Positions 1-13,000 of a stretch of 64,000 nucleotides of DNA are shown piece after piece. Source of the DNA: Eutreptiella sp. 'Long Island Sound 2002'. Its lineage: Eukaryota; Protista; Euglenida. The DNA lies in the NCBI GenBank assembly GCA_964036045.1, contig OZ038379.1:27156001-27220000 (forward strand), read 5' to 3'. The notes beneath the pieces are model-generated. The model ran no database searches. It saw nothing but the letters and a program-made list of their open reading frames with translations, and had not been told where the DNA came from. The position numbers were made by a program, and so were the translations under genes. Position 1 is the stretch's first letter; every line of letters starts with the position of its first letter.

Positions 1-379
1 ATTTCTCCAACCCCCCCCCCCTCCTTCGGCGGGCGTCCATGGCACACACACCCCCCCCGCAGAGCAATTTTCGGGTCGCCCTGGCATCCCTGTGGAGGAG
101 GGGGGGGGGAGGGCGCTGCATGCCCATCGCAGCGCGCGGGGGGGGGGGGGTATCCCCATTGTACCGGTGCACCCAGCGCAGAAAACGGGGCGAGGAAGGA
201 GTGGGCCTGACAAGACTAGCTTGACCCACTTACAGCATGTTGGGGGGGGCGTGCCATGTGGTGGTGGGGCTAGGCACGGGGGCTCCATGCCCAGGCTGCC
301 TATGAGGTATCGGACCAACCGGCGCTCAACAGGTCCTTTTGGCAGCAGGCCCTGGAATATGCCGCGCGGCATGGGGCAG

Positions 380-3300
380 CAACACAGCTGATTGGGGGGG
401 GGTTTAATTTCCCCCTCGACGATCTGCTGCAGGCACCGACCACACTGCAGGGGCTCCTGCTCACGCGGCGTCTGGTGGATCCCGACTCAGAGGTGGCGGC
501 CCACGCGGGACAGCTGTGCTCGACCCCCTGTGCTCGTACGTCGGGGTGAGGGGAGCGCCCCCCACCCGCATCGATGGGCTGCTGGTGGACACCCGCTTGG
601 CAGCCCTGTTGCGCGGGTCCGAGGTGCCGCCAGTGTGTGGAATAGCGCACCACCGCCCGTTGCGGTTCGATCTGCACGCCGAGGGGGCAGTGCAGAGCGT
701 CGTCAAGCTCATGCGCCTGCCCCGGGTGGTCATCGAACCCATGCAGGATGAAGAGCGGATCCCCGTGGTGCAGGGCCTGCTAGACCCCCTGGGCCCACGA
801 TGGTGCGCGGAGCTGGCGGCCGGCCTATGGTGGACGTGGACCTGGGTGGCGGAGGAGACGCTGCGGACCCTCTCAACCCCAAGGTTCAAGCCCGGCGCGC
901 AGCTTCCGGTGGCCCCCTTGCACCGCAAGAGGGGCAGGGGCACGGAGCGACTGCTAAAGCGGGTGCGGCTATGCCTCCGCCAGCGCTGCACAACGGGCGA
1001 CCCGGTGGCCTAACTGGAGGCGCGTCTCCAGGCAGTGCAGAGCGCCCACACCCGCGGCTTGGGGCGGCGCCGCGGCTACTCATGGAGGCCTGGGATGCAC
1101 TGCAGCGGCGGCTGCAGCGCGTGCATGCGCTCAGCGATGAGTACACGCACCTCCGGGTGTCGGGGCCGCCGGACCGGCTACCCCGGCAGAGCTCCGGGGA
1201 CTACGCACAACCGTGCAGGGCCGCATTTGCAAAGAGCAGAGGCGCGGGGACAAAAACCGCCTCCAGGCGTGGAGGGATTGGCTCGATGAGGCCTGGTCCT
1301 CCAAGCAGGGTGCAGTCTATAGGTGGCTCAATTAAGGGCTGTACTTTCGCCCCCCGGTCACCTTCCTCGTCCAGCCCGATGGCACGCCGACGGTGAACCT
1401 GCGGGAAATGGATTCCCTGCTGCAAGACGTCTGGCGGCCCATGAACCGCAAATATGCGGAGGTTGTGGAGCCGGACCCGGCAGAATTTCTCCGTCGGTAT
1501 GGGCACCACGTTAGGTGTGTGCCCATTGGTCTCGGGACCCTCTCTCCGGGCCCGCCGTAGCGGATGCACCCCTCGGCTCAGGGCATGGACGGTTGGAGGC
1601 TTGAGGATCTGCGCGCTCTGCCGGACCAACTCCTCGGCTGGCTAGCAGAACTCCTGCACGAGGTGGAACGCCAGGGGCAGTGGCCCTTGCGCCTCGAAGG
1701 GTTACACGGCCCTCATTCCCAAGGAGGGCCCACTAGGGCCGCTAAACACGCAGCCACTGACGGTGCTGTCCATGGTCTACCACCTCTGGGTGGGGATCAG
1801 GCTAGAGGAGGCCGTCCGCTGCCAGGGGCGCACCCGTGTGCCTTCGGCTTCCGTCCGGCGCGCAGCGCCCTGGATGGCGCCACATTGACCCATGTACTCT
1901 TGGAGCTGTGCCGCCTGAAGGGGTGGGTGGTAGCGGGGATGAGTATCGATTACGTAAGTGTTTTGATCTCATCCCCCAATCCATCGTCCTAGTCCTGGCG
2001 TTGGAGCTAGGCATGGACCCAGGGGTCGCCAAGGCCCTGGGGTCCCTGTACAAGCAGCTCCGCCGGGCTTTCAAGGTGGCCGGGTGCTTGGGGACCTTGT
2101 GGCGGGCCACCAACGGAATCTTGCAGAGCTGTCCCCCCTCCGTGATCCTGTTGAATGTCCTCACCGCGATGTGGAAGTGGGAGGTGGAAGCCCTGCGGGA
2201 GCAAATCTGCGTGGCCACGGTATCCTTGCCGCCAGTCTTGGTGACGGTAGAGGCCGACAGTTTGTCGGACAGGGGAGTCAGGGAGGCGACTCTACGGAGG
2301 AGTCCGAGTCGCGGCTGCAGCTGCAGGTGCAGGGCCCGGGGTTGGTGGCCCTCGGGGCGTCGGGCTATGCTGACGACACCCAGGCGGTGGCGCCGGGGGC
2401 GGCGCCCCCCCAACGGACAGCCCCCACGACGGAGGCGTGGCTCACCCTGACGGGGCAGGAGTCCGCGTGGACAAGTCCTGCTCCTAGTTGCAGGGGGAGG
2501 GGGGGGCATAAGCGGTATTGCAGTGCGGCCTCCCCATACTGGTGGCGGAATGTTTCCGCCAATTGGGGGTGGACGTGGCCGCGGGAGGCGCCCGCGGCAC
2601 AGGTATGGTGCTGGTGCGGCGCCTGGACGCCGGCCGTAGTGTGCTACGGCGGCTCCCGCACCTTCCTGCATTTCAACGGAGGGTGCGCGCAATCAGCACC
2701 CTAGTAACGCCACTGGCACTCCACGGGGTAGCCGTCGCCCCGGTGACAGACCGGGACCTGTTGGGCCTGGAGACCATGGTCCTATGGGCAGTGTGGGGGG
2801 CGACGAGGCTCGGCCGCGGCAAGGAGGTGGTCTTTGTGGTCCTAGGACCACACCGGGCCACCGCATCTCCCCAATGATGCACACCGCTACGAGCGGGTAC
2901 TCTGGATGGCCCGGATTGCACGCACGCCGGGGCCGGTACAGGTCCTCATGCAAGCCATCTAGGAGAGCGACCACCGGCCCCAACGATTGGGCCCTTCGGG
3001 CGCTCCCTGCACGTGGTCCGCGTGCGGGGATGGCAGCTGCCCGAGGGCTGGTGCTCCTGGGCGGTGCCGGGCCAAACAGAGCCGCTGCACCTATGCGGCA
3101 GGTCCACCACAGGGTGCGGGACAGCCTGCGCTGTCATGCCATGCGCAGATTGGAGGCCCGCCGCCCGGCAACCTATGGTCGGCTAGGAGACGGGGTCGAC
3201 GGAGAGGCCTGCCGCGCAGCACTCCGCGTGGCATCCACGGAGCTAGAGGCCCCCCTCCTGCGGGGCTTGCTGGCCGGGGCGCTGTGGACGGCGGCCCACG

Positions 3301-4130
3301 TGCGCGGGCACAACATGCGGGCCACCTCGAGCTGCCCTGGCTGCAGCTCGCAGCACGAGGATGAGGCGCATGTCCCTTGGGACTGCCCGTTGTGGGAGGT
3401 AGCCAGAGAGGGGTGGCACGCTTGCAAGCAGCGGAGCGGCTGCAGCTGGGCCCCGACGCGGTGGCCGGCGTGCCTGCGACGAGCGGGCTCGCTGCCCTTG
3501 GTACTGTCAGCGGGGGCAAACCGCCAACAAGTGGACGCGTTCCTTAGACTGTACAGGCTGTATGGGATGTACCTCGCGGTGCTGGCCGCCAGGTATGCCC
3601 ATACCCCCTCAGGGGTGCCGGGGCAGGGCGAGGCCCTCTTCCCGCGGCGCCCGGCGCCTGGCGGCAAGGAGGGTTATCTATAGCAGGCGCTGTGCGGCCC
3701 CCTGCCGCCACCGCCGGCGGTGCCGGCAATGCGATTGCACCCGGGAGTACCGCTAGGATGGCCGTGGGAGCCGGTGTTTGCCCACAACCTGGTCCGCTGG
3801 GCAGCGGCCCAGTGCTGGTAGGACGGCCAAGGCCCAGGGGACCTCCACATGGGTAGAGCTGGCCCTGGACTGGGAGTTGTTCCTAGGCCGGGCCCTGCCG
3901 GCGTCATCCCACCATCAGTTGCGGGGAATGCGCCTCCCCCTCGGGGAAAGGGCGCAAGTGCTGCGGCAAGCGTTGCGGCTATTGCAGCGCCACATGGCGG
4001 CAGGACGGCTCCTGCAGGGGGACCCAAGCGACCGCCGGGCACTCATCCTGCTGGGGGGCTGCCTGTGTACGGGGCTGCGGGCGCGGCCCTTTTTCGCCGC
4101 CCGGGTGGACATGGTGCTGCAGTTGTAGGG
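380..4130 (+). mobile_element. Degenerate non-LTR retrotransposon (APE endonuclease + reverse transcriptase + C-terminal zf-RVT-like CCHC), frameshifted/pseudogenised
   Basis: APE-like motifs GGFNFPL (~397-417), PTRIDGLLVD (~562-591) and HHRPLRF (~650-668). RT motifs SAQGMDGW (~1575), GYTALIPKEG..PLTVLSMVY (~1700-1780), KCFDLIP (~1955), NGILQSCPPS (~2111), GYADD (2363-2377) and FRQLGV. Zinc knuckle CPGCSSQHEDEAHVPWDC (~3333-3386). The motifs are collinear but lie in different frames. Element ends are approximate. Confidence 0.88.
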
Positions 4131-5189
4131 CCTTGCGCTGCACCTGCAAGAGATGTGGCTGGACCGACTGTGCGCGCTAGCACGCATACGGCCGGGGGGA
4201 GCTAAGCGCTTCCTAATGGCTTACTTTCCCCGCCCCCCGGAAGGCGGGCCCGCTTGGCTGCCCGATGCCCGCCGGCCGCGGCAAGCGCGCGCTTAGGGAG
4301 TGGCCCGGGCGGAGGAGCAACGGCCGCGGCGGCAAGGGGAGGGAAAGGGCTCAGTGGGAGCACGGTGTGAGCAGCACAGCTCGCCATTGTCCGCCGCTGC
4401 ATGCAGCTGGGTTGCGAAATCAGCCGCTGCTATCGCGCGGGACACGTGGGGCACCGGGCGCCGGGCCACGCCCCCCCCCCCCCCCGCAGCGGCTGGCGCC
4501 AGAGGCCAGGTAGGCAGGGGCGAACGCGCTATCCGCGTGGCTTGGGCAGGCCCGACCAGCGTCTGCAGCGCTTACTCAGGGCCACCGAGATGCGGCGAAA
4601 AACATCGGGGAGCGACGCCGGGGCCTCGGCCGCCGGCGGTGGGGGTTGCTCCGCGGGGGAAAGAGAGGGGGGGGGGCGGGGGAGCCCCGCGGCGCAGGAA
4701 GTGCCCTGGGCGGGTCGGCATTAGGGTGGGCGCTCGCTGGCGCCGGCCCGGAGTTGTCTCTGGTGGTTGGCGGGGGGGAGAACGGATCAGCATCCCCCCC
4801 TTCCCGGTTGTGCAGGTCCCACACTCACAGCCCTCCCCTCGTCAGCCGGGAGGTTTTGGTTTGGGGCGCTTCGGGGATCTGAGGTCATGGGGGGGTGTGC
4901 ACCGGCGAGCCGCAGGCCGGCAGCAGCGGCTGATGCCATAGCCCAAGCTTTTGCACCTGGGGCACGTGGGTGCCCCATGCTCCAGGCAAAGCGCGCCCTA
5001 AGTGCCGCTGCTTGCCCCTGGCGGGCGGCTGCGCTGCGGAGCCGTGAGCGGAACGCTCTTGGACGGCGCCCAGGGGGGCCCTCTGGCGTATGGCAGGAGT
5101 GGCGGCCGTATACGGGCTGGCGCCCGCAGGCGCCGTGCCCACGTGTCCCGGCATTGAGTCGCCAGGCGCATAAGCTGCAGCATCCTCTC

Positions 5190-5570
5190 GTGGCTGAAAA
5201 ACACATAAAGAGGGTCTAAAACATGGTTTACGTAGGATATTTGATCATTATGAATGGTCAGAAAATCAAAAAAATCGGTTTTGAAAATTTCCACTTTTGA
5301 GCCGCCGAGAGTGGAAAATTGCATAAGCAGGTTGTGCCCTTGCCCCCGTCCAAACACCCAAATAGGGTGAAAAGCACATGACTAGGGTCTAAAACATGCT
5401 TTACATAGGACATTTGATTGTTGTGGATGGTGAGAATGTAAAAAAAATCAGTTTCGGAAATTTCCATTTTTGAGCTGCCGAGGCTAGAAAACTACATGAA
5501 CAGGTTGTGCCCTAGCCTCTGTGGTGCCCCCTCCAAAAAACATCCAAATATGGTGAAAAACACACCAAGA
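5190..5570. repeat. About 2.2 diverged tandem copies of a ~172-185 bp AT-richer unit
   Basis: agggtctaaaacatg at ~5212 and ~5383; ttttgagc(c/t)gccgag and caggttgtgccct each occur twice; a third partial start at ~5552. Confidence 0.8.
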
Positions 5571-7753
5571 AGGTATTGCGCTTTTATAGTCCGCGGGCCT
5601 ATGTATAGAGGTCGAGGGGCGGGGGGGAAGGGCCGATCTTGGGTTCTGTGCGCTCCCCCGTGGGTGCGCCCCGCCTATGGTGAACAGCGGCACGGAGGGA
5701 CGAGCCGGTTAAGACTATGTCTCTTCCGAACTCGCCCTCCCATGTCGCCGCCCAGGCAAGACTGGGCCCCCGGTGGGCGAGTCACCCAACGCCGCCGAGG
5801 ACGCTACTGCGGAGGGGGGTGGCATACGCTCATGCAGCTACGTCGCGCGTGCGGGCGCGCCTGCACTACTGTGGCACCCCGCAGGGCGCGCCCGCAGTCC
5901 TTGCGGGGGGGAGGTGCACGTGCGGCGTGATGTGCCTTGTGCCCCTTGTGCCTGTGCAATCTGTCGCTGTGCATTGTGCACCGTGCTCGGTGCTGCACGC
6001 ACACCTACACCTGCCTGCCCTACGTGCCTGGGCTAGCGTGCCTCACGCGCTGTGTGCTGTGCCAGTGGTGCACCCTCAACCTATGCAGCCTGGTGCTATG
6101 CACTGTGGGTTGTGCTCCGTGCTGCCTGTGCCCGCGTCGCTGTGTGCCCTACTTGCCCTGGGCACCCTGCCTCCCGTACGGGGGGGCGGGAGGGGGGGGG
6201 GGGGGCAGAGTTAGCATGGGGGCGGGATGAAGGTTGCCCGTCCCCTTGCGCCATCAGTGCAGCAGAAATGCTGCCAAATATCTCCTGCAGCCCCAAGGCT
6301 GCCCCCCAAGGGGGGGGGGGGGTCGCCTGTCGCCGCCAAGCGCGGCGGGCTCGCTCTGCGTGCTCGTCGTGGCGCGGGCACTACGTCGCGTTCTGGTGAG
6401 GGCGGGCGCTGCGGCTCCGATCTGCGGGCCGCTGTGTTGGCCTGCGCCGCGCCGTGCCACGGCGACGATCCCCACCCCGGTGTCGCAGGTGGCCGCAGCC
6501 GAAGGCCGCCAGGTCCATAGCGGACATGCTCCGCGCACCCCCCCCCCCCCCCCGCCCGCTCCCCAGCTGGCGACGCGAGGGAGGGCTCCGCTGACCCTGT
6601 GGCAAACGCGCCTTCCGCGCCTTCACCACCTCAGTCCACACTGCCGCAGCGACGGCAGCACGGCAGGGTAAGCACGGAAGAGACCTAGTCCCCTCTGGGT
6701 CGTCCCTCCTAGCTGCCGTGCAGACTCAAGCGGGGGGCTTGTAGGGGAGGCCATGGGCACCTGAACTCGACTCGGCCCACCTCCCCGCCCCTCGGCCTCT
6801 GTACATATTCCAGTGGACGCTAAAAGACGAATGCCCTCTTTATGTGTTTTTCATCCTATTTGGGTGTTGATGGGGGGGTTCTGAATGACTTCGTGACTAG
6901 CTAACTGATTGACGGACTGTGCTCCCTCTCTCTTCGAGGTGTCTTGCCGATAGGCAATAGAATTTTGGAACGGGCCCACTTGGCCCAACAAAAGTGTGCC
7001 ATTTTCTAGGTGTTATTGGTGGTGCCCCTGGTATGCAAATTCCCCTTGTGCCCACATGGTTTGCCACAAGAACCCCTTTGCAGGCTAGTTGGAGCTGCTA
7101 CGATTTGTCTGTAGGAGCCAACAAGCATCCAGTAGGCTCCAAGAAATAATTGCACCAGCGAAATTTTCACAGGAAATAACAACCACTATTCACCATTTAT
7201 GCTTGTTGTGCATGTGTGTTGGGCATTTTGAACCAAAAATTAGTGGTATTTAACAACAGAAGCCAACTTTTCTCTGCACAGAATTTTGCGGTTCCAAATT
7301 TGGCACATACCAATCCCCCGCCCGCTCAGTAGAAACAAGTGGCCAACAACCTCGCGCAACCATTAGCCTCCAAGAAAAATTTTGGATATGGTGCATGAGA
7401 AAGGGGCAGCCCCCTACTATGGGTAGGTGGTTTGAACCAGTGAGTGTGGTGCTTTTTTTCCCCCAACTAGGGGACACTAGGCATTTGAGGTATGATCCGT
7501 CAAATGTGTGTGGAATGTGGAATGGCAGCGTGTGGGGTCATTTTGGTGGGCCCAGCCTCGAGAGCCTACTAAGGGGAGGGGGGAGAACAGGTTGGAGGGC
7601 CCTCCCCCCCGGAGTTCGAGAGCAAAATGCCCCCCCGGAGTCCGAAAACAGGGCATTTTGCTCTGAATGAAACGCCCGTCCTCAAGAGATATTGCAACTT
7701 GAAGATGGTGGTGTTATGGCGGTGTGGTGGGTTCTTGTTGCACAGCGCTGCCA

Positions 7754-7785
7754 CTCTCCAATCTGATTTTACGACTTCCTCCCAG
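7754..7785 (+). promoter_or_regulatory. Candidate 3' splice / spliced-leader trans-splice acceptor upstream of the ALB3 start codon
   Basis: Pyrimidine-rich tract ctctccaatctgattttacgacttcctcccAG ends at 7785, 31 nt before the ATG at 7817. SL trans-splicing is general in euglenozoans; that this site is used is inference. Confidence 0.55.
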
Positions 7786-7816
7786 GGACGATTTTGTTGT
7801 TGTGAACGACCGAAGC

Positions 7817-10030
7817 ATGAAGTTGCATCACGATCCAACGCTTGCTGGAGCAGAAGGATATGATACTTTTGGAGGTGCGCCAAGGCAAACCAATAGCTCT
7901 CGCAGCCTTTGGGCATCCCTGCTCTTCTTCTTCGTTGCTGTAATTGCTGTTCTGAGCTGGAACCAACATACTGTCCACTCCGCGATGAGCAGTGCCTATA
8001 CCCAACTTGGGATGACCCGGGGGCTGCCTGCCATCCCACGTTATGGGCAATCCCTGACAATCCCGAAACCTGCAATTGCCCGTGCCCCAGTCCATGCCAT
8101 CCAACGGGACCGCGAAACAACGACTGTCGTGAGCAAACGTGAGGCGCCTTGGTGGGGTAACGCATTCTTCAAGCCCAAGGCCAACCCAAGGTGGTCACCC
8201 ATGAAGCCCACCAAGAATGCTCGAGTGAAGTCTCTCATGGCTTGGGCATCCGGGCTGGCGCTGGTACTGACGGCAATGTCACCCGAAGTCACCCAAGCAG
8301 CAACTGACATGGTTGACAGTCAATACTTGACTGCGGTGGCATCCTCTATGCAGGGCACTGTCCACGACATCAGCGGCCTGCTGCAGAACCTGCCACAAAC
8401 CCAGAATTCCCCAGAAGTTGGAGCTTTGGTGGAGTCTGTGACTCAAGTGTACAAGACCACGATTCACAACCTCGGTGCGCTTGCAGACGGCGGGATCGGA
8501 GACATCCCCAAGGAAGGCTGGTTTGACAAGTTCGTGCACCTCATTGAGAATAGCATCTTGGGGTTGAATGGAGTCCTTAGCAATGCCAACGTTCCGGGAT
8601 CTCTCGGAGTCTCCATCACCCTGTTCACGATGGCAGTGAAGGCTATCCTTTTGCCCGTCAATTTTGCGCAGCTGAAGTCCAGCACCCAGATGCAGGCGAT
8701 CCAGCCCAAGGTCAAGGAAATCCAAGAGCGCTTCGCCGAAGACAAGAACACCATGAACATCATGCTTGCCGAGCTGTATGCCAAGAATGAGGTCAACCCA
8801 CTGCTGGCCATCGTCCCAGCATTTGCCCAGATTCCCATCTTCATTGGTTTGTACCGAGCTTTGAGGGAGCTGGGGCAGCAGAATCTGTTGGACGAGCCCT
8901 TCCTGTGGATCCCGAGTTTGGAAGGTCCAACATTTGATCTGCAGACTGGACACACTCTCGAGTGGCTGACGCAGCACCAGCTGTCCAACTCAGACACCCT
9001 GGCCTATCTATCCATTCCTGCTCTCCTCATCGTCACCCAGACCCTGAGCACGCAGCTGAGCAAGCAGCCCGATGGCCCGGAGACTCCAACATGGATCTAC
9101 TTTTTGCCACTGTTGACCGCGTCGTTTGCTCTCAATGTTCCGTCGGGCCTCGCAGTCTACTGGATTGTGAACACCGTCGTCACTGCAGGCACAAACATTG
9201 GTGTCCGAAAATACTTGGAGAACGACCCTTCGATCAAGGCGGCTGCTGAAACGGACATCGACTCTCTGTCTGTGGACAGTGCAAAACGTGAAGCTGACAT
9301 GGCCCCATCTTATCAAGAGGCATTGCTCAGAGCTGTGGACAAAGATGCGGAGCTGTCAGCCGCTTTTGCTGAGATGCGTCAGAGCCCGAAGTCTGTCATG
9401 AAGTACTATGGTGACCGAGAGTTTACCGGGAGGTTGGCGGATTTGGTGGCCAAAGAGCAAGAAATCATGCTTGAGGAGCAGCAGAAAAGGAAAGCGGAAC
9501 TGGACTCAGCCCCCAAAATAGTGGCAAAGAAGAAGGAGGATATCTGCGTTGCAGTGAGGGCTGGCAATATGACGGGAGTGAAGGATTATTTGGCAGCTGG
9601 TGTCGACCCGAACTTCAAAGATGAGAAGGGCATTTCCGCCTTGCACTACGCTGTGGGAAAAGGTCGGATGGACATGGCCAAGCTGCTTGTGAAAGAGGGT
9701 GCTGACGTCAACATCCGAGATTTTGCAGATAACTCCCTGTTGCACTACGCCGCGGGCTACGGCCGGGAGAACATGATCAAGTTCCTGCACGAACAAGGGG
9801 TGGATTTCAATGCCCTGAACGCGAACAAGGAGAGTCCTCTAGATCTGGCGACCAACGAGGACAACTCTTTCTCTGACGAAAAATGCGCCAAGCTGCTCCG
9901 GAAGTATGGGGCGGAGGAGGGCCTCGCGGTGGGCCCCTTGGCCCCTGAAGTACTCGACGAGAAAGAGGCAAGGGCTGCCGGTCGCGCAGACGGTGAAGTA
10001 CAGGATGCAGAATTCACTGAGGTCAAGTAA
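7817..10030 (+). CDS. ALB3: Plastid thylakoid membrane protein insertase ALB3 (YidC/Oxa1/Alb3 family) with euglenid bipartite targeting presequence and C-terminal STI1-like + ankyrin-repeat extension (737 aa, intronless)
   Basis: The ORF track starts at GTG 7724; the first ATG is at 7817. The N-terminus has hydrophobic LWASLLFFFVAVIAVLSW, then a S/T/R/K-rich transit-like region, then a second hydrophobic segment LMAWASGLALVLTAMSP. The YidC/ALB3 core GWFDKF...AVKAILLP...MQAIQPKVKEIQERF...VNPL...IPIFIGLYRAL...FLWIPSLEGPT...GLAVYWIVN spans ~8516-9220. Ankyrin motifs SALHYAVGKG, SLLHYAAGYG and SPLDLA span ~9538-9910. Confidence 0.95.
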   Translation: MKLHHDPTLAGAEGYDTFGGAPRQTNSSRSLWASLLFFFVAVIAVLSWNQHTVHSAMSSAYTQLGMTRGLPAIPRYGQSLTIPKPAIARAPVHAIQRDRETTTVVSKREAPWWGNAFFKPKANPRWSPMKPTKNARVKSLMAWASGLALVLTAMSPEVTQAATDMVDSQYLTAVASSMQGTVHDISGLLQNLPQTQNSPEVGALVESVTQVYKTTIHNLGALADGGIGDIPKEGWFDKFVHLIENSILGLNGVLSNANVPGSLGVSITLFTMAVKAILLPVNFAQLKSSTQMQAIQPKVKEIQERFAEDKNTMNIMLAELYAKNEVNPLLAIVPAFAQIPIFIGLYRALRELGQQNLLDEPFLWIPSLEGPTFDLQTGHTLEWLTQHQLSNSDTLAYLSIPALLIVTQTLSTQLSKQPDGPETPTWIYFLPLLTASFALNVPSGLAVYWIVNTVVTAGTNIGVRKYLENDPSIKAAAETDIDSLSVDSAKREADMAPSYQEALLRAVDKDAELSAAFAEMRQSPKSVMKYYGDREFTGRLADLVAKEQEIMLEEQQKRKAELDSAPKIVAKKKEDICVAVRAGNMTGVKDYLAAGVDPNFKDEKGISALHYAVGKGRMDMAKLLVKEGADVNIRDFADNSLLHYAAGYGRENMIKFLHEQGVDFNALNANKESPLDLATNEDNSFSDEKCAKLLRKYGAEEGLAVGPLAPEVLDEKEARAAGRADGEVQDAEFTEVK

Positions 10031-13000
10031 ATGTGGGCGCACTTTCTGGGAATACAAGGGTTAGATGGACTTGTGTAGTCACAGCTGTGCATGTGTGTGC
10101 GGTCCCGTTGCTCACAGCCCTTGGGGACTATCCATGCTATCCGTGCTGATGGCTTGGATTTGTCCCAAGGAGCATTGCAGAATTTTCCCCTCTAGGTTTC
10201 CTGAGCACACACATTGCACTTTCCATGTTGTGCCCTACAGATGCATTGTACAATGCCCCTATTGGCTACTCAGAAGGTGACAGCTGATCACCTGTTTTGT
10301 GGTGTGCCTGTGGCGTGCGAGTCGCAGTTCACATGTAATGGTGGCAATGGTGGCAGGCACTGCTGTGTCCTGGTGGAGGGTAGTTGAAGGCTAAGACTGG
10401 GTGGCGGGGACCTTGGGTGCCTGTTGGGTGGTGCTGGGGGGACTGCTGCTAGACATGTCCATGTGAGGTTTTCTACTGCTATTTACGGCCCGTGTGAAGC
10501 TGTTTTACATGCTATTGGGTGCACGGGCACAGTTTGGTGCATGTCACCCTGCATGTGCGCACTCACACACTCAAACAGGAATTCGTAACATCTTGATAGC
10601 TGCATCCAAAGAGAGATGATTGTGGGCGACGATTATGGGAGAGCCCACGTTACCACATGACACACAACTCCCAGAAAGGCAAAGCATACAAAACAGAATC
10701 GGATCAGCTGTGCTCCCTGTCTGCCCCATGGGCACGTGGGTCTGTGGAGGAGAACACGTCATATATATTTGGCAAAAGAAGTGCCAATGGCACACCGCTT
10801 TTCATTTTGAGGGAGTAGGACATGGCTTCTGTGATTCTCTTCTGCATAGCTCAAAGTTGCAGCAGGATTGTGGAAAAGAATCATCTCTTTTCCATGAATA
10901 TGCCCAAGGGCACCTGCATGGGTGGCAGCCTACTGCACAACAAGCTTTCTATGTGCAGGCCTAAAAAGAACAGGGCTCGTTTTTATTGTTTTCAAGCCCC
11001 TTTTCACCCCGAAGTGCCAGCCGCATCCGATTATGGTGTTTACTTGGTACAGCACCAGAGGGCTGGGGTGAACTGTGGAGTGTGCTCAAATGTGGTGGAT
11101 CACTGGTATCAGTTTTTTTTCAATCTTCCGTATGCTATGTTGCCAATGTTTCGTTACCGAGGGGTGCATTGCTGCTGAGATGGGAGCCACGTTTGAACAT
11201 TGGCAGTTTTCTGGGCCACCCTCACCCTTCTGGGTACCCATTATCTGGACAATATCTGCACCAGTGGGACAACCTTTGCACCGCCGGCGCTGCCTGTGTA
11301 CCACCGCTTACACCAGGTGCACAAACATTGCATGCAGCGGCAGGCTACTCAAATTTCTGAACTAAAATAGAAATTCAAAAAAAGATAGCTTCTCACTTGT
11401 ACTAAGTATCTCCTGTCCTCAAGACCTTGAATCATCACAAGTCCATGTGGTTGTATGCAGCCTAGATGGTGTGTTGGGAGAGGTCATGCTGCTTGGTGGT
11501 GCATGTGATGCCCAGGGGGTGCAGGCAGTCTGGATTGCAAGGGGACTGCTCCGGTGTGGAGGCAAGGAGGACATGGTGCCCAAGCAGCTGGTGCTCCACA
11601 CTGTTGTGCACTGCTGTCCAGATGGTGGACAGGTGCCTGTGCTGCTGAGGTGGCACAGAAGCTGCCAGTTCATGCCAGGAATGTCTGTGGAACGCCCGGA
11701 TCAAGCCAGGGCTGGTTTGAATAATTTGCATGGAGCTGGGATAGGCGCTCTGCTGCTCCGTTGTGGGCAGCTCCGGTGGACGGGTGGCCCTCTGCCCACG
11801 TGAGCTCCCCGCTTGGGACTGGGAGCATCTGTGCGGCCACCACTACGAGCAGCGCAGCTTGCATGCACCGTGCAGTCCACGTTGATGTTGATCACTGCTG
11901 CTGAAGCTTGGGGAGGCACAGCCCCTTGTGATGCCACAGTGGTGAGATGCGCCTGCAGAGCCCCAGTGCTGGTAGTGGCCAGGGTGACCATCACTGGCTG
12001 TATGGCTGCCGCTACCACAGCCACCAGGTGGAAGGGTTGAGGCTATTATGAGAGGCTCTAGTTGCTGATGAAGGAGGTTGATGGGGTCACTTTAGAGGAG
12101 CGCAAAGCATGCACATACTCCAGAACTGGCTGAGGGAAATGATTGCGAAGCGGCACAAGAGAATGAGCGAAGGACTCGCGCACCACAACAGGTAGGTACT
12201 TCGCAGCGAAGCAGCACACACTGTGGGTTCACAAGCACGCATTATGGCAGATGCAACACTGCACAGCACCTAGCACAGCAGACAAACACAGAATGGCAGA
12301 AGAGAGAAGGCAATGGGTAGCCTGCAGAACTGACACGTAACGGAGCATATGTGGTGCTATCAATGGGTAACAATGACACAGGACTAAGGAGGGAGTCTCT
12401 GTGGCGGTCAACCAGGCTAGCGCTCCAAGGGGTGTGGCACCGTAGAAAGGAGGAGTGCCACTTGCACAGATGATCTCCTTTAGCCTTTGTGTCCGAGGAA
12501 GGTGGCAGTGACCCCCTGCACCTCCTCATGCTGACGCAGAGCCTTGGCCACCACAGTTTGCATCCCCAGCAGTGGGCAAGGAGATGGACGATGAGGAAAA
12601 GCTGCCCCTCCAACGTGGTGACTTGGGGGAATCCAGCTCCGGTGCACATTTGCTTTCGGACCTATAGCACGTTCTCCTAGAAGGGTGGAAGCCCTCGAAA
12701 ACCCCATGAAGGGGTGCAGGGTGGCATGGAGCCACCTCCAATTATTACCATTTACTGTTGGCGAACTATGGATAGGGAGGCTAGACATTGAGTGTGGTAG
12801 GTGCCTCTTCTAGTGATGCAACTTGCTTATCTGATGGCATGGAGGGGCAAGCCGAAAGTTGCAGCATAGCAAAAGGAAACAACAAAGAGAGAACTGATTT
12901 TGAGAGGAGACACCAACGATGTCCGTGCATGGAAAGATGGTTTTAGGGAAGTGGGGAGGGCATGATACAGGGTGTATTTCCCCTGCACGGGGTACCTTGC

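Follow-up and report, generated by a model that had tools for sequence, protein, structure and literature searches.

The C-terminus of YidC/Alb3-type insertases lies on the stromal side, and the plant proteins AKR2A and AKR2B are cytosolic targeting factors for chloroplast outer-membrane proteins. The tail of plant ALB3 is described as disordered and basic, with binding sites for cpSRP43 and ribosomes (PMC4660199, PMC8733628); plant cpSRP43 is described as holding LHC proteins and docking on this tail. In plants, AKR2 keeps transmembrane segments shielded and, through its ankyrin domain, recognises the head groups of MGDG and PG (PMC8836251). Euglenophytes have been reported to be devoid of cpSRP54, cpSRP43 and cpFtsY, a loss to which an earlier note on this DNA had also referred, and the effect of this loss on euglenophyte Alb3 was left for future work (PMC6242988). 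The same study lists Eutreptiella with two Alb3 forms and describes translational fusions of plastid proteins (L15-L10, TyrRS-MetRS, FtsH-Ycf45 and others), the processing of which its authors left undecided (PMC6242988).

We analysed a window of 64,000 nucleotides from Eutreptiella sp. 'Long Island Sound 2002' (contig OZ038379.1), in which an intronless ORF on the forward strand, coding for 737 amino acids plus stop, joins an Alb3-type insertase to an ankyrin tail (Table 1). The insertase core is common to this protein, plant ALB3/ALB4, Chlamydomonas Alb3.1/Alb3.2 and chlorarachniophyte Alb3, and the topology is expected to be that of the family, the C-terminus lying in the stroma. The euglenid has two paralogues with differing tails, a feature shared with the organisms that have ALB3/ALB4 or Alb3.1/Alb3.2. 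However, in contrast to the disordered, basic tail of plant ALB3, the tail of the fusion protein appears to be a folded module of AKR2-like type and carries a net charge of -13. Its segment order, in which four ankyrin repeats with the LHYAAGYGR motif come after a DP/STI1-type segment, is common to AKR2A/AKR2B and their protist relatives, and homology is established to the free AKR2-like proteins of euglenid and dinoflagellate type. Unlike the cytosolic AKR2A/AKR2B, the module is covalently joined to a presequence-bearing insertase and is predicted to reside inside the plastid. The likeness to cpSRP43 is one of functional analogy only, namely, a module of four ankyrin repeats that meets the stromal side of Alb3: cpSRP43 is a chromodomain-ankyrin protein, whereas the Pfam scan of the fusion protein (E up to 1) yielded no chromodomain family. 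With no chromodomain, and no cpSRP43 chain among the 60 best PDB matches listed, the tail is not a relative of cpSRP43; its ancestry is AKR2-like.

Gene, transcript and targeting signal

RNA contigs from three runs start at position 7785 and are colinear with the genome, jointless, to beyond position 10700; their lengths of 3.29-3.38 kb imply a transcript end near 11100. In runs X1 and X4, the loose 5' letters ahead of this start are GTCTATTTTTTTTC and TTTTTTTC, and GTCTATTTTTTTTC is the 3' portion of the spliced leader of euglenids. The first AUG past the trans-splice site opens the ORF; the GTG at 7724 lies upstream of the mRNA start (7785/7786) and was discarded as a start codon for that reason. 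Over the tail, a 737-aa transcript product from the MMETSP collection (P0001) is 100% identical to the window protein; on side-by-side reading, the two differ at one residue further upstream (T in P0001, N in the window). A single spliced-leader mRNA thus encodes both the insertase and the tail, and it runs without a joint into and through the ankyrin region. The earlier note had read a continuous frame from the YidC part into the ankyrin repeats, which the single ORF and the jointless contigs bear out, and had pointed to DKDAELSAAF and LHYAAGYGR, which begin at nucleotides 9338 and 9740; termination or splicing ahead of the ankyrin region, which it had named as a possible objection, does not occur in the RNA contigs. 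An Rfam search of positions 6500-12000 gave no match.

Table 1. Features of the Alb3-ankyrin gene, with positions in the window and residues of the encoded protein
Feature	Position	Strand	Residues	Evidence
AG acceptor of spliced-leader trans-splicing, preceded by a pyrimidine-rich stretch	7784..7785	+		RNA contig starts
5' UTR, about 31 nt, AUG-free	7786..7816	+		RNA contigs and sequence
Complete intronless CDS	7817..10030	+	1-737	ORF reading, RNA contigs, P0001 (737 aa)
First hydrophobic stretch of presequence, signal-peptide-like	7904..7966	+	30-50	Kyte-Doolittle scan
Second hydrophobic stretch	8225..8281	+	137-155	Hydrophobicity scan; fits a stop-transfer anchor
Mature N-terminal region	8306..8605	+	164-263	P0005 match starts at residue 164; 47% mean identity among four fusions
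YidC/Oxa1/Alb3 core	8606..9205	+	264-463	PF02096, TIGR03592; 75% mean identity among fusions
Linker	9206..9301	+	464-495	47% mean identity; low-confidence start of structure model
STI1/DP-like helical segment, APSYQEALL...VMKYYGDREF	9302..9451	+	496-545	hhalign, profile match, models
Long-helix continuation and spacer	9452..9544	+	546-576	Alignment with free AKR2-like proteins; model helix 45-75
Four ankyrin repeats, AKR2-type LHYAAGYGR	9545..9916	+	577-700	Pfam Ank_2, Ank, Ank_4; modelled helix pairs; AKR2-like alignment
C-terminal motif EGLxxGP(L/V)APE(V/Y)LD	9917..9964	+	701-716	74% mean identity among fusions
Acidic, poorly conserved C-terminal end	9965..10027	+	717-737	Alignment; pLDDT about 50-60
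3' UTR	10031..10700	+		Covered by the same RNA contigs as the CDS

The protein starts with a presequence that contains two hydrophobic stretches. The P0005 mRNA (L002) encodes a stretch comparable to the first of these, and the second lies where a stop-transfer anchor would be expected in a euglenophyte presequence of class I (layout as in PMC6242988). The insertase core is recognised by both Pfam 60KD_IMP (PF02096, E 4.7e-42, 144.2 bits against a cut-off of 35) and NCBIfam yidC_oxa1_cterm (TIGR03592, E 1.6e-42, 145.7 bits against a cut-off of 84.3). In the search of a representative protein library, the closest non-euglenid relative was a chlorarachniophyte Alb3-type protein, and the identity to Lotharella Alb3 is 44%.

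A class I presequence would leave the protein body on the cytosolic side of vesicles derived from the ER/Golgi. There, the AKR2-like end could act during biogenesis only, shielding Alb3's own membrane helices in transit or guiding the vesicle to the plastid surface. The presence of both hydrophobic stretches of class I is compatible with such a role, as is the apparent use of class-I-like presequences by both groups of Alb3-ankyrin proteins that we identified (see below); furthermore, free AKR2 is a cytosolic plastid-targeting factor (PMC8836251). Nevertheless, many other polytopic plastid proteins of euglenids, the second Alb3 paralogue included, bear no such tail, and we regard this purely speculative scenario as very improbable.

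The tail and its AKR2-like relatives

Homologues of the tail include free, presequence-less euglenid proteins of about 257 aa, with 36-40% identity across 82% of the tail. The free set consists of P0044, which starts right after the translated spliced leader, one MMETSP0809 protein and two E. gracilis transcripts; the free AKR2-like gene of MMETSP0809 is present in the same genome assembly as the fusion gene. The free euglenid proteins, in turn, are 36-43% identical to proteins that carry PF17830 (STI1-HOP_DP, gathering score 29.1 bits) together with ankyrin repeats. These AKR2-like relatives score 31.8-34.9 bits against PF17830, above the cut-off, and the only named one among them is Symbiodinium AKR2B, a name assigned automatically. 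Taken together, these comparisons support the identification of the tail as an AKR2-like module, with a DP/STI1-type segment directly before four ankyrin repeats; the earlier note had proposed the fusion of such a module to ALB3, and homology to the free proteins throughout the length of the module sustains that proposal. Compared with the free proteins, the tail is devoid of their first ~75 residues, contains about 18 extra helix residues within residues 546-576 (alignment A1) and ends in a conserved C-terminal motif that is missing from them in the alignment. The homologue search with the tail found no unfused module bearing a presequence.

The short helical DP segment of the tail has in common with the STI1/DP domains of Hop/Sti1, Hip, SGTA/Sgt2, ubiquilins and Tic40 the pattern D-P-x-L-x-x-x-F...M-K-Y, but in the window protein it falls under the Pfam threshold, and its fold matches are not significant. 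Specifically, no STI1 match was found for the window protein in Pfam at E up to 1, nor for the excised segment at E up to 10; a direct PF17830 match in the fusion P0003 (E 0.0026, 18.1 bits) remained under the 29.1-bit cut-off. By contrast, hhalign aligned the tail segment with the DP segment of AKR2-like proteins at 96.5% probability (E 8.7e-10), and the top match of the segment profile in the PDB was the C-terminal STI1-type domain of Tic40 (2LNM, E 0.03). The segment is modelled as three short helices and the start of a long helix, with pLDDT of about 90-96. For the DP-only model, the first-ranked Foldseek match was Sti1 DP2, which is not significant (E 1.9, TM 0.46), and VIA-align (wide) gave only generic helical arrangements (Z 6.3 or less). 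Because the window segment has no Pfam STI1 match, the STI1/DP assignment relies on transitive and profile-profile evidence; the STI1-like label of the earlier note thus holds at the level of profile-profile comparison and AKR2-like homology but not at that of a direct Pfam match. The tail segment matches about 40 of the 55 PF17830 profile positions (about 13-55), so its client groove may be incomplete.

In the ankyrin part, Pfam Ank families cover residues 577-700 (best E 3.6e-22, others weaker), and the structure model contains four helix pairs. The 60 best PDB matches listed for the tail or its profile are generic ankyrin proteins and DARPins, with no AKR2 or cpSRP43 chains among them, and a search of the ESM Atlas with residues 400-737 returned only generic ankyrin clusters.

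Conservation of the fusion and candidate roles of the tail

The Alb3-AKR2-like fusion is kept in four euglenid-type sequence clusters, with mean identities among the four fusions of 75% in the core, 65% in the DP segment, 56% in the ankyrin repeats and 45-47% in the linkers; 26 of the 50 DP-segment residues are invariant. The second Alb3 paralogue, as seen in E. gracilis (EG_transcript_6586), is ankyrin-less and has an ordinary basic tail, and the tail of Lotharella Alb3 is basic as well. In dinoflagellate-like transcripts, we detected a separate family of Alb3-ankyrin proteins with no detectable DP segment. A candidate DP remnant in this family (VDPEKVLAKAF, compared with VDKDAELSAAF) was discarded, given an hhalign probability below 1%.

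Given that euglenophytes are reported to be without cpSRP54, cpSRP43 and cpFtsY, it is plausible that the tail serves as a built-in client receptor. We tentatively propose, along the lines of the earlier note, that the protein is an Alb3 insertase with a tethered AKR2-like receptor that replaces the cpSRP54/cpSRP43/cpFtsY relay, a reading to which we give somewhat less than an even chance. Under this model, the fusion gene would be nuclear and, as an expressed gene, supply one of the two Alb3 insertases of the plastid; the class-I-type presequence would carry the protein into the plastid, where it would span the thylakoid membrane and expose its C-terminus to the stroma; and the stromal tail, probably copied from the cytosolic AKR2-like protein of the same cell, would remain joined to the insertase. 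The module would receive imported hydrophobic clients, chiefly light-harvesting proteins, at the insertase; until these are inserted, their transmembrane parts would be covered by the DP segment, the ankyrin face or both. With clients received at the insertase itself, the ankyrin-tailed form would act post-translationally, independent of the cpSRP relay, and the basic-tailed paralogue might serve ribosome-coupled insertion. The gene is a concrete, testable candidate answer to the question of how euglenophyte Alb3 copes with the loss of cpSRP54, cpSRP43 and cpFtsY (PMC6242988). If the tail captures clients, this would be a new way to couple substrate delivery to a YidC-type insertase, and a cytosolic factor of the host would have been transferred into a secondary plastid.

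The ankyrin repeats need not bind clients here, however, because the ankyrin domain of plant AKR2 binds lipids. The tail might instead be a docking or regulatory device, in which the ankyrin domain binds thylakoid lipids or a partner and so positions, clusters or regulates the insertase, for instance where thylakoids are formed. Both lipids recognised by the plant domain, MGDG and PG, are thylakoid lipids (PMC8836251). The conservation of the ankyrin repeats and of the extra C-terminal motif fits this possibility, and the dinoflagellate-like family, which keeps the ankyrin repeats with no detectable DP segment, suggests that the repeats are the indispensable part. Yet, in the euglenid fusions, it is the DP segment that is conserved above the ankyrin repeats and hence is not a passive spacer, and we consider a purely docking or regulatory tail to be quite unlikely.

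The remaining question is whether the two halves stay together. The AKR2-like part could simply ride on the Alb3 presequence into the plastid and be cut off there, an alternative that the earlier note had raised, to work as a soluble stromal chaperone of imported membrane proteins or in some other role; even so, it would be a new stromal AKR2-type factor. In-frame fusions of plastid proteins are documented in euglenophytes, and more are expected by the authors who described them (PMC6242988). In these C-terminal fusions, as in the one described here, a plastid protein that bears a presequence is followed in frame by a second protein, and the arrangement is conserved across euglenophytes. Moreover, the linker between the two halves is both the least conserved and the least confidently modelled part between them. 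The parallel is incomplete, though: in fusions of the L15-L10 type, the downstream part is a plastid protein that lost its own presequence, whereas here it appears to be a copy of a cytosolic protein, and Alb3, unlike the partners in those fusions, has an obvious possible functional link to the part attached to it. Inspection by eye revealed neither a linker repeat nor a polyprotein-type spacer. Cleavage would also be unnecessary for correct placement of the module because YidC-type proteins have their C-terminus on the stromal side from the outset. Finally, the pairing with Alb3 is kept in all four clusters, and an ankyrin-tailed Alb3 is found in a second algal group as well; this recurrence of Alb3 as the partner points to a functional link rather than to a chance carrier. 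On balance, release of the tail appears unlikely, albeit worthy of serious consideration, and the tethered receptor remains the reading that we prefer.

A second Alb3-ankyrin family and the trees of the tail

The DP-less family in dinoflagellate-like transcripts suggests that the joining of Alb3 to ankyrin repeats is a recurring theme; a literature search yielded no published description of either fusion. In a broader version of the tethered-receptor reading, an AKR2-type ankyrin module would have been joined to Alb3 in euglenophytes and, separately, in the dinoflagellate-like group, both with three-membrane plastids served by the ER/Golgi, to form a self-contained receptor and insertase in one that handles imported light-harvesting proteins independently of SRP, with a cytosolic targeting chaperone recruited to replace a lost bacterial pathway. 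In this general form, we consider the scenario rather unlikely. A full-length search of a representative library of 1.84 billion proteins gave, besides giant ankyrin proteins that dominated the results, no more than the fusions, an ankyrin-less paralogue and two Alb3s of the ordinary kind, so the search says little on the frequency of YidC-ankyrin fusions.

In phylogenetic trees of the DP-plus-ankyrin region, the tails of the four fusion clusters group together in a single clade (support 100/100). The euglenid tails group with the free euglenid proteins in the best tree, with support of only 56/65. The AU test does not reject a clade of euglenid tails and dinoflagellate-like Alb3-ankyrin tails (p 0.33), nor one that unites the latter with the free AKR2-like proteins of dinoflagellate type (p 0.15).

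The Alb3 fusion gene and its transcript

The window carries a transcribed, conserved gene that joins an Alb3 core to an AKR2-like module in a single ORF. We aligned contigs from three RNA-type runs (X1, X3, and X4) to window 7300-10700. Each run contributes one contig of 3.29-3.38 kb over the gene, starting at 7785 (X1 and X4) or 7793 (X3), with extra 5' letters ahead of the gene, GTCTATTTTTTTTC or TTTTTTTC, which we read as the 3' terminus of the euglenid spliced leader; two related mRNA contigs, L002 and L007, carry the same leader. All three contigs are colinear with the genome beyond 10700, with zero joints. Thus, the contig starts and this colinearity define the trans-splice acceptor, a 5' UTR of ~31 nt that contains no AUG, and an intronless gene. 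Termination or splicing of the transcript ahead of the ankyrin repeats, named in the earlier note as an outcome that would refute its reading, does not occur. A start at the upstream GTG at 7724 was discarded because the mRNA begins downstream of it.

The tail of the encoded protein is 100% identical to that of P0001, a 737-aa MMETSP transcript product, and side-by-side reading reveals a single differing residue, upstream of the tail. The gene is also contained in the ENA assembly ERZ25074135, and the stretch is present in 16 public runs, four of which are estuary metatranscriptomes with 94-96% of the sampled words.

Immediately 5' of the acceptor lies a high-copy repeat (7414-7641) that includes the inverted repeat GCAAAATGCCC...GGGCATTTTGC, yields zero Rfam matches, and reaches DNA-run contig depths of 464x and 176x, compared with 10.7x across the gene. 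Further upstream, the GC content is 0.65-0.69 in window 1-6000, against 0.47-0.60 elsewhere in the window, and near 6200-6700 there are only short overlapping ORFs on both strands, whose products have a high content of G, A, R, and P.

Pfam assigns residues 264-463 to the YidC/Oxa1/Alb3 core (60KD_IMP; E 4.7e-42), in agreement with the NCBIfam match to yidC_oxa1_cterm (E 1.6e-42), and residues 577-700 to ankyrin families. Together with the RNA contigs, these matches bear out the original reading of the ORF as an Alb3 core continued in frame by ankyrin repeats; the peptides quoted for it, DKDAELSAAF and LHYAAGYGR, are encoded from nt 9338 and nt 9740, respectively. Ahead of the mature part, only residues 30-50 and 137-155 are strongly hydrophobic, a layout that is also encoded by L002 and, judging from the sequence, matches the two-stretch class I euglenophyte presequence (PMC6242988). 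For residues 490-737, AlphaFold (43-sequence alignment, mean pLDDT 87.6) predicts three short helices and one long helix in model residues 10-75; four pairs of ankyrin helices come next, then a conserved motif that may be a docking peptide, and finally a disordered acidic end.

Features of the Alb3 fusion gene and its protein, and members of the second Alb3-ankyrin family
Feature	Position	Strand	Remark
Trans-splice acceptor AG	window 7784-7785	+	from RNA contig starts
Single ORF	window 7817-10030	+	737 aa from first ATG
N-domain	residues 164-263		moderately conserved
Linker	residues 464-495		
EGLxxGP(L/V)APE(V/Y)LD (candidate docking peptide)	window 9917-9964	+	present in 4/4 fusions, absent from free AKR2-like proteins
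Second-family proteins P0050, P0254-P0258	contigs L009-L013, L018-L025		

Relationship of the tail to AKR2

With just the tail as query, the search recovers a family of ~257-aa proteins with 36-40% identity over 82% of the tail length, and the homology covers its helical segment as well as its ankyrin repeats. These free proteins lack a presequence, as is apparent from P0040 of Eutreptiella (MMETSP0809), the E. gracilis transcripts P0068 and P0074, and P0044, which opens with the translated spliced leader HFLSVYFFS and has its start codon ten residues further on. Their next relatives (36-43% identity over 97% of the length), one of them named AKR2B of Symbiodinium, contain Pfam STI1-HOP_DP (PF17830) and ankyrin repeats. 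On rescanning, three of these relatives score 31.8-34.9 bits against PF17830 (cut-off 29.1), and the match coincides exactly with the segment aligned to DKDAELSAAFAEMRQSPKSVMKYYGDREF of the tail. Profile-profile comparison of this segment from the four fusions with the DP segment gives 96.5% probability (E 8.7e-10), one of the fusions, P0003, matches PF17830 directly (E 0.0026), and the best PDB match for the segment profile is the C-terminal STI1-type domain of Tic40 (2LNM, E 0.03).

Pfam STI1 has no match in the window's own protein, so that, of the STI1-like and ankyrin tail initially proposed, the ankyrin part stands on Pfam matches and the STI1-like part on relatives and profiles. The segment matches only about positions 13-55 of the PF17830 profile. 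A confident model of just this segment (pLDDT 89.8) gave no significant match in fold searches, with Sti1 DP2 at rank 1 in Foldseek (E 1.9, TM 0.46) and generic helical matches in VIA-align. On sequence evidence, homology of the tail to AKR2-like modules is well supported, and we read its helical segment as a truncated, diverged STI1/DP-type domain that may lack an intact client groove.

In contrast to cpSRP43, which has a chromodomain, the window protein contains none according to Pfam, and no cpSRP43 chain is among the 60 best PDB matches listed for the tail. By these comparisons, the tail is not a relative of cpSRP43, and therefore any replacement of that protein would be by analogy.

A free AKR2-like gene is located on another contig of the same assembly (L026:2001-2687), and its spliced product is identical to P0040. 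Taken with the MMETSP transcript and the estuary metatranscriptomes that match the fusion gene, this makes the marine euglenid Eutreptiella gymnastica, or a species closely related to it, the most probable source, rather than Euglena. Unlike the intronless fusion gene, the free gene is interrupted, and P0077 reads through two or more of its introns. No spliced-leader remnant is present upstream of the fusion gene, so retroposition is unsupported.

Conservation of the fusion and a second family

The full architecture is common to four sequence clusters (P0001, P0002, P0003, and P0005), and the P0005 mRNA bears the euglenid leader. Phylogenetically, the four tails group as a single clade on a long stem (support 100/100), and the free euglenid proteins exclude them (84/85), which argues that the fusion arose once and early; AU tests favour no one source of the module. 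Mean pairwise identity among the four fusions is 75% in the insertase core, 74% in the C-terminal motif, 65% in the DP-like segment (26/50 residues invariant), 56% in the ankyrin repeats, and 45-47% in the linkers. The helical segment is thus strongly constrained.

The weak match P0050 in the tail search led to marine metatranscriptome contigs encoding 708-809-aa proteins that also combine a 60KD_IMP core with ankyrin repeats. Compared with the euglenid fusion, these have one fewer ankyrin repeat, an additional C-terminal extension of ~170 residues, and no detectable DP segment; their core is ~26% identical to the euglenid core across the joint alignment. Their presequences contain a hydrophobic stretch followed by RRR, and several of the contigs start ...CCCTTTGGACTCAAG, which we take to resemble the dinoflagellate spliced leader. 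The family is probably non-euglenid, with a dinoflagellate-like source as the putative taxon, and the tree is compatible with common as well as separate origins of the two fusions. The earlier note would have been weakened by such fusions in lineages that retain cpSRP43; the second family is no such case because cpSRP43 is restricted to plants and green algae (PMC6242988). If anything, it strengthens the case that Alb3 and an ankyrin tail are functionally linked.

Putative role of the tail

In line with the earlier note, cpSRP54, cpSRP43, and cpFtsY are reported to be absent from every euglenophyte examined (Záhonová et al. 2018, PMC6242988). Euglenophytes have two Alb3 forms, Alb3A and Alb3B, both missing in the colourless E. 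longa, and the consequence of cpSRP loss for Alb3 was left to be elucidated (PMC6242988), a stated open question on which the fusion bears directly and in a readily testable way. That paper and its available supplements make no mention of ankyrin. [quoted passage not shown] A literature search for Alb3 and ankyrin in Euglena or dinoflagellates, incomplete in coverage, returned nothing relevant. Hence, we found no published description of an Alb3-AKR2-like fusion; given that coverage, novelty is not proven.

In the established topology of YidC/Alb3 proteins, the C-terminal tail lies on the stromal side, so the tail would face the stroma. We class the window protein, putatively, as an insertase of the YidC/Alb3 type that has recruited an AKR2-like module on its stromal side. 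Our tentative preference is that the tail remains joined to the insertase and would there receive imported hydrophobic clients, chiefly LHC proteins, rendering their insertion step SRP-independent, and that a basic-tailed paralogue would handle ribosome-coupled substrates. The first interpretation of the fusion, as a client-holding module tethered to the insertase in place of the SRP pathway, is partly supported.

Several C-terminal translational fusions are known, their processing unknown (PMC6242988), and cleavage following co-import, which would release a soluble stromal AKR2-type factor, is an unlikely yet serious alternative; within the size range searched, no unfused module with a presequence was found. 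According to a review (PMC8836251), plant AKR2 keeps the transmembrane domain of its outer-envelope clients shielded, and MGDG and PG are the lipids that its ankyrin domain recognises. Docking of a lipid or partner by the ankyrin repeats would be slightly less probable still, and a tail that acts only while Alb3 itself is in transit seems very improbable.

A candidate for the second half of the preferred division of labour is P0179 (E. gracilis EG_transcript_6586), a second Alb3 paralogue of 35% identity to the window protein, with a basic C-terminal tail and no ankyrin repeats. The Alb3 of the chlorarachniophyte Lotharella, 44% identical in the core, likewise ends in a basic tail, whereas the tail of the window protein has a net charge of -13. 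The alignment of P0179 to the window protein begins at residue 12 and covers the presequence (YDTFDAP vs YDTFGGAP), and since it extends through this region, the two apparently share an ancestral presequence.
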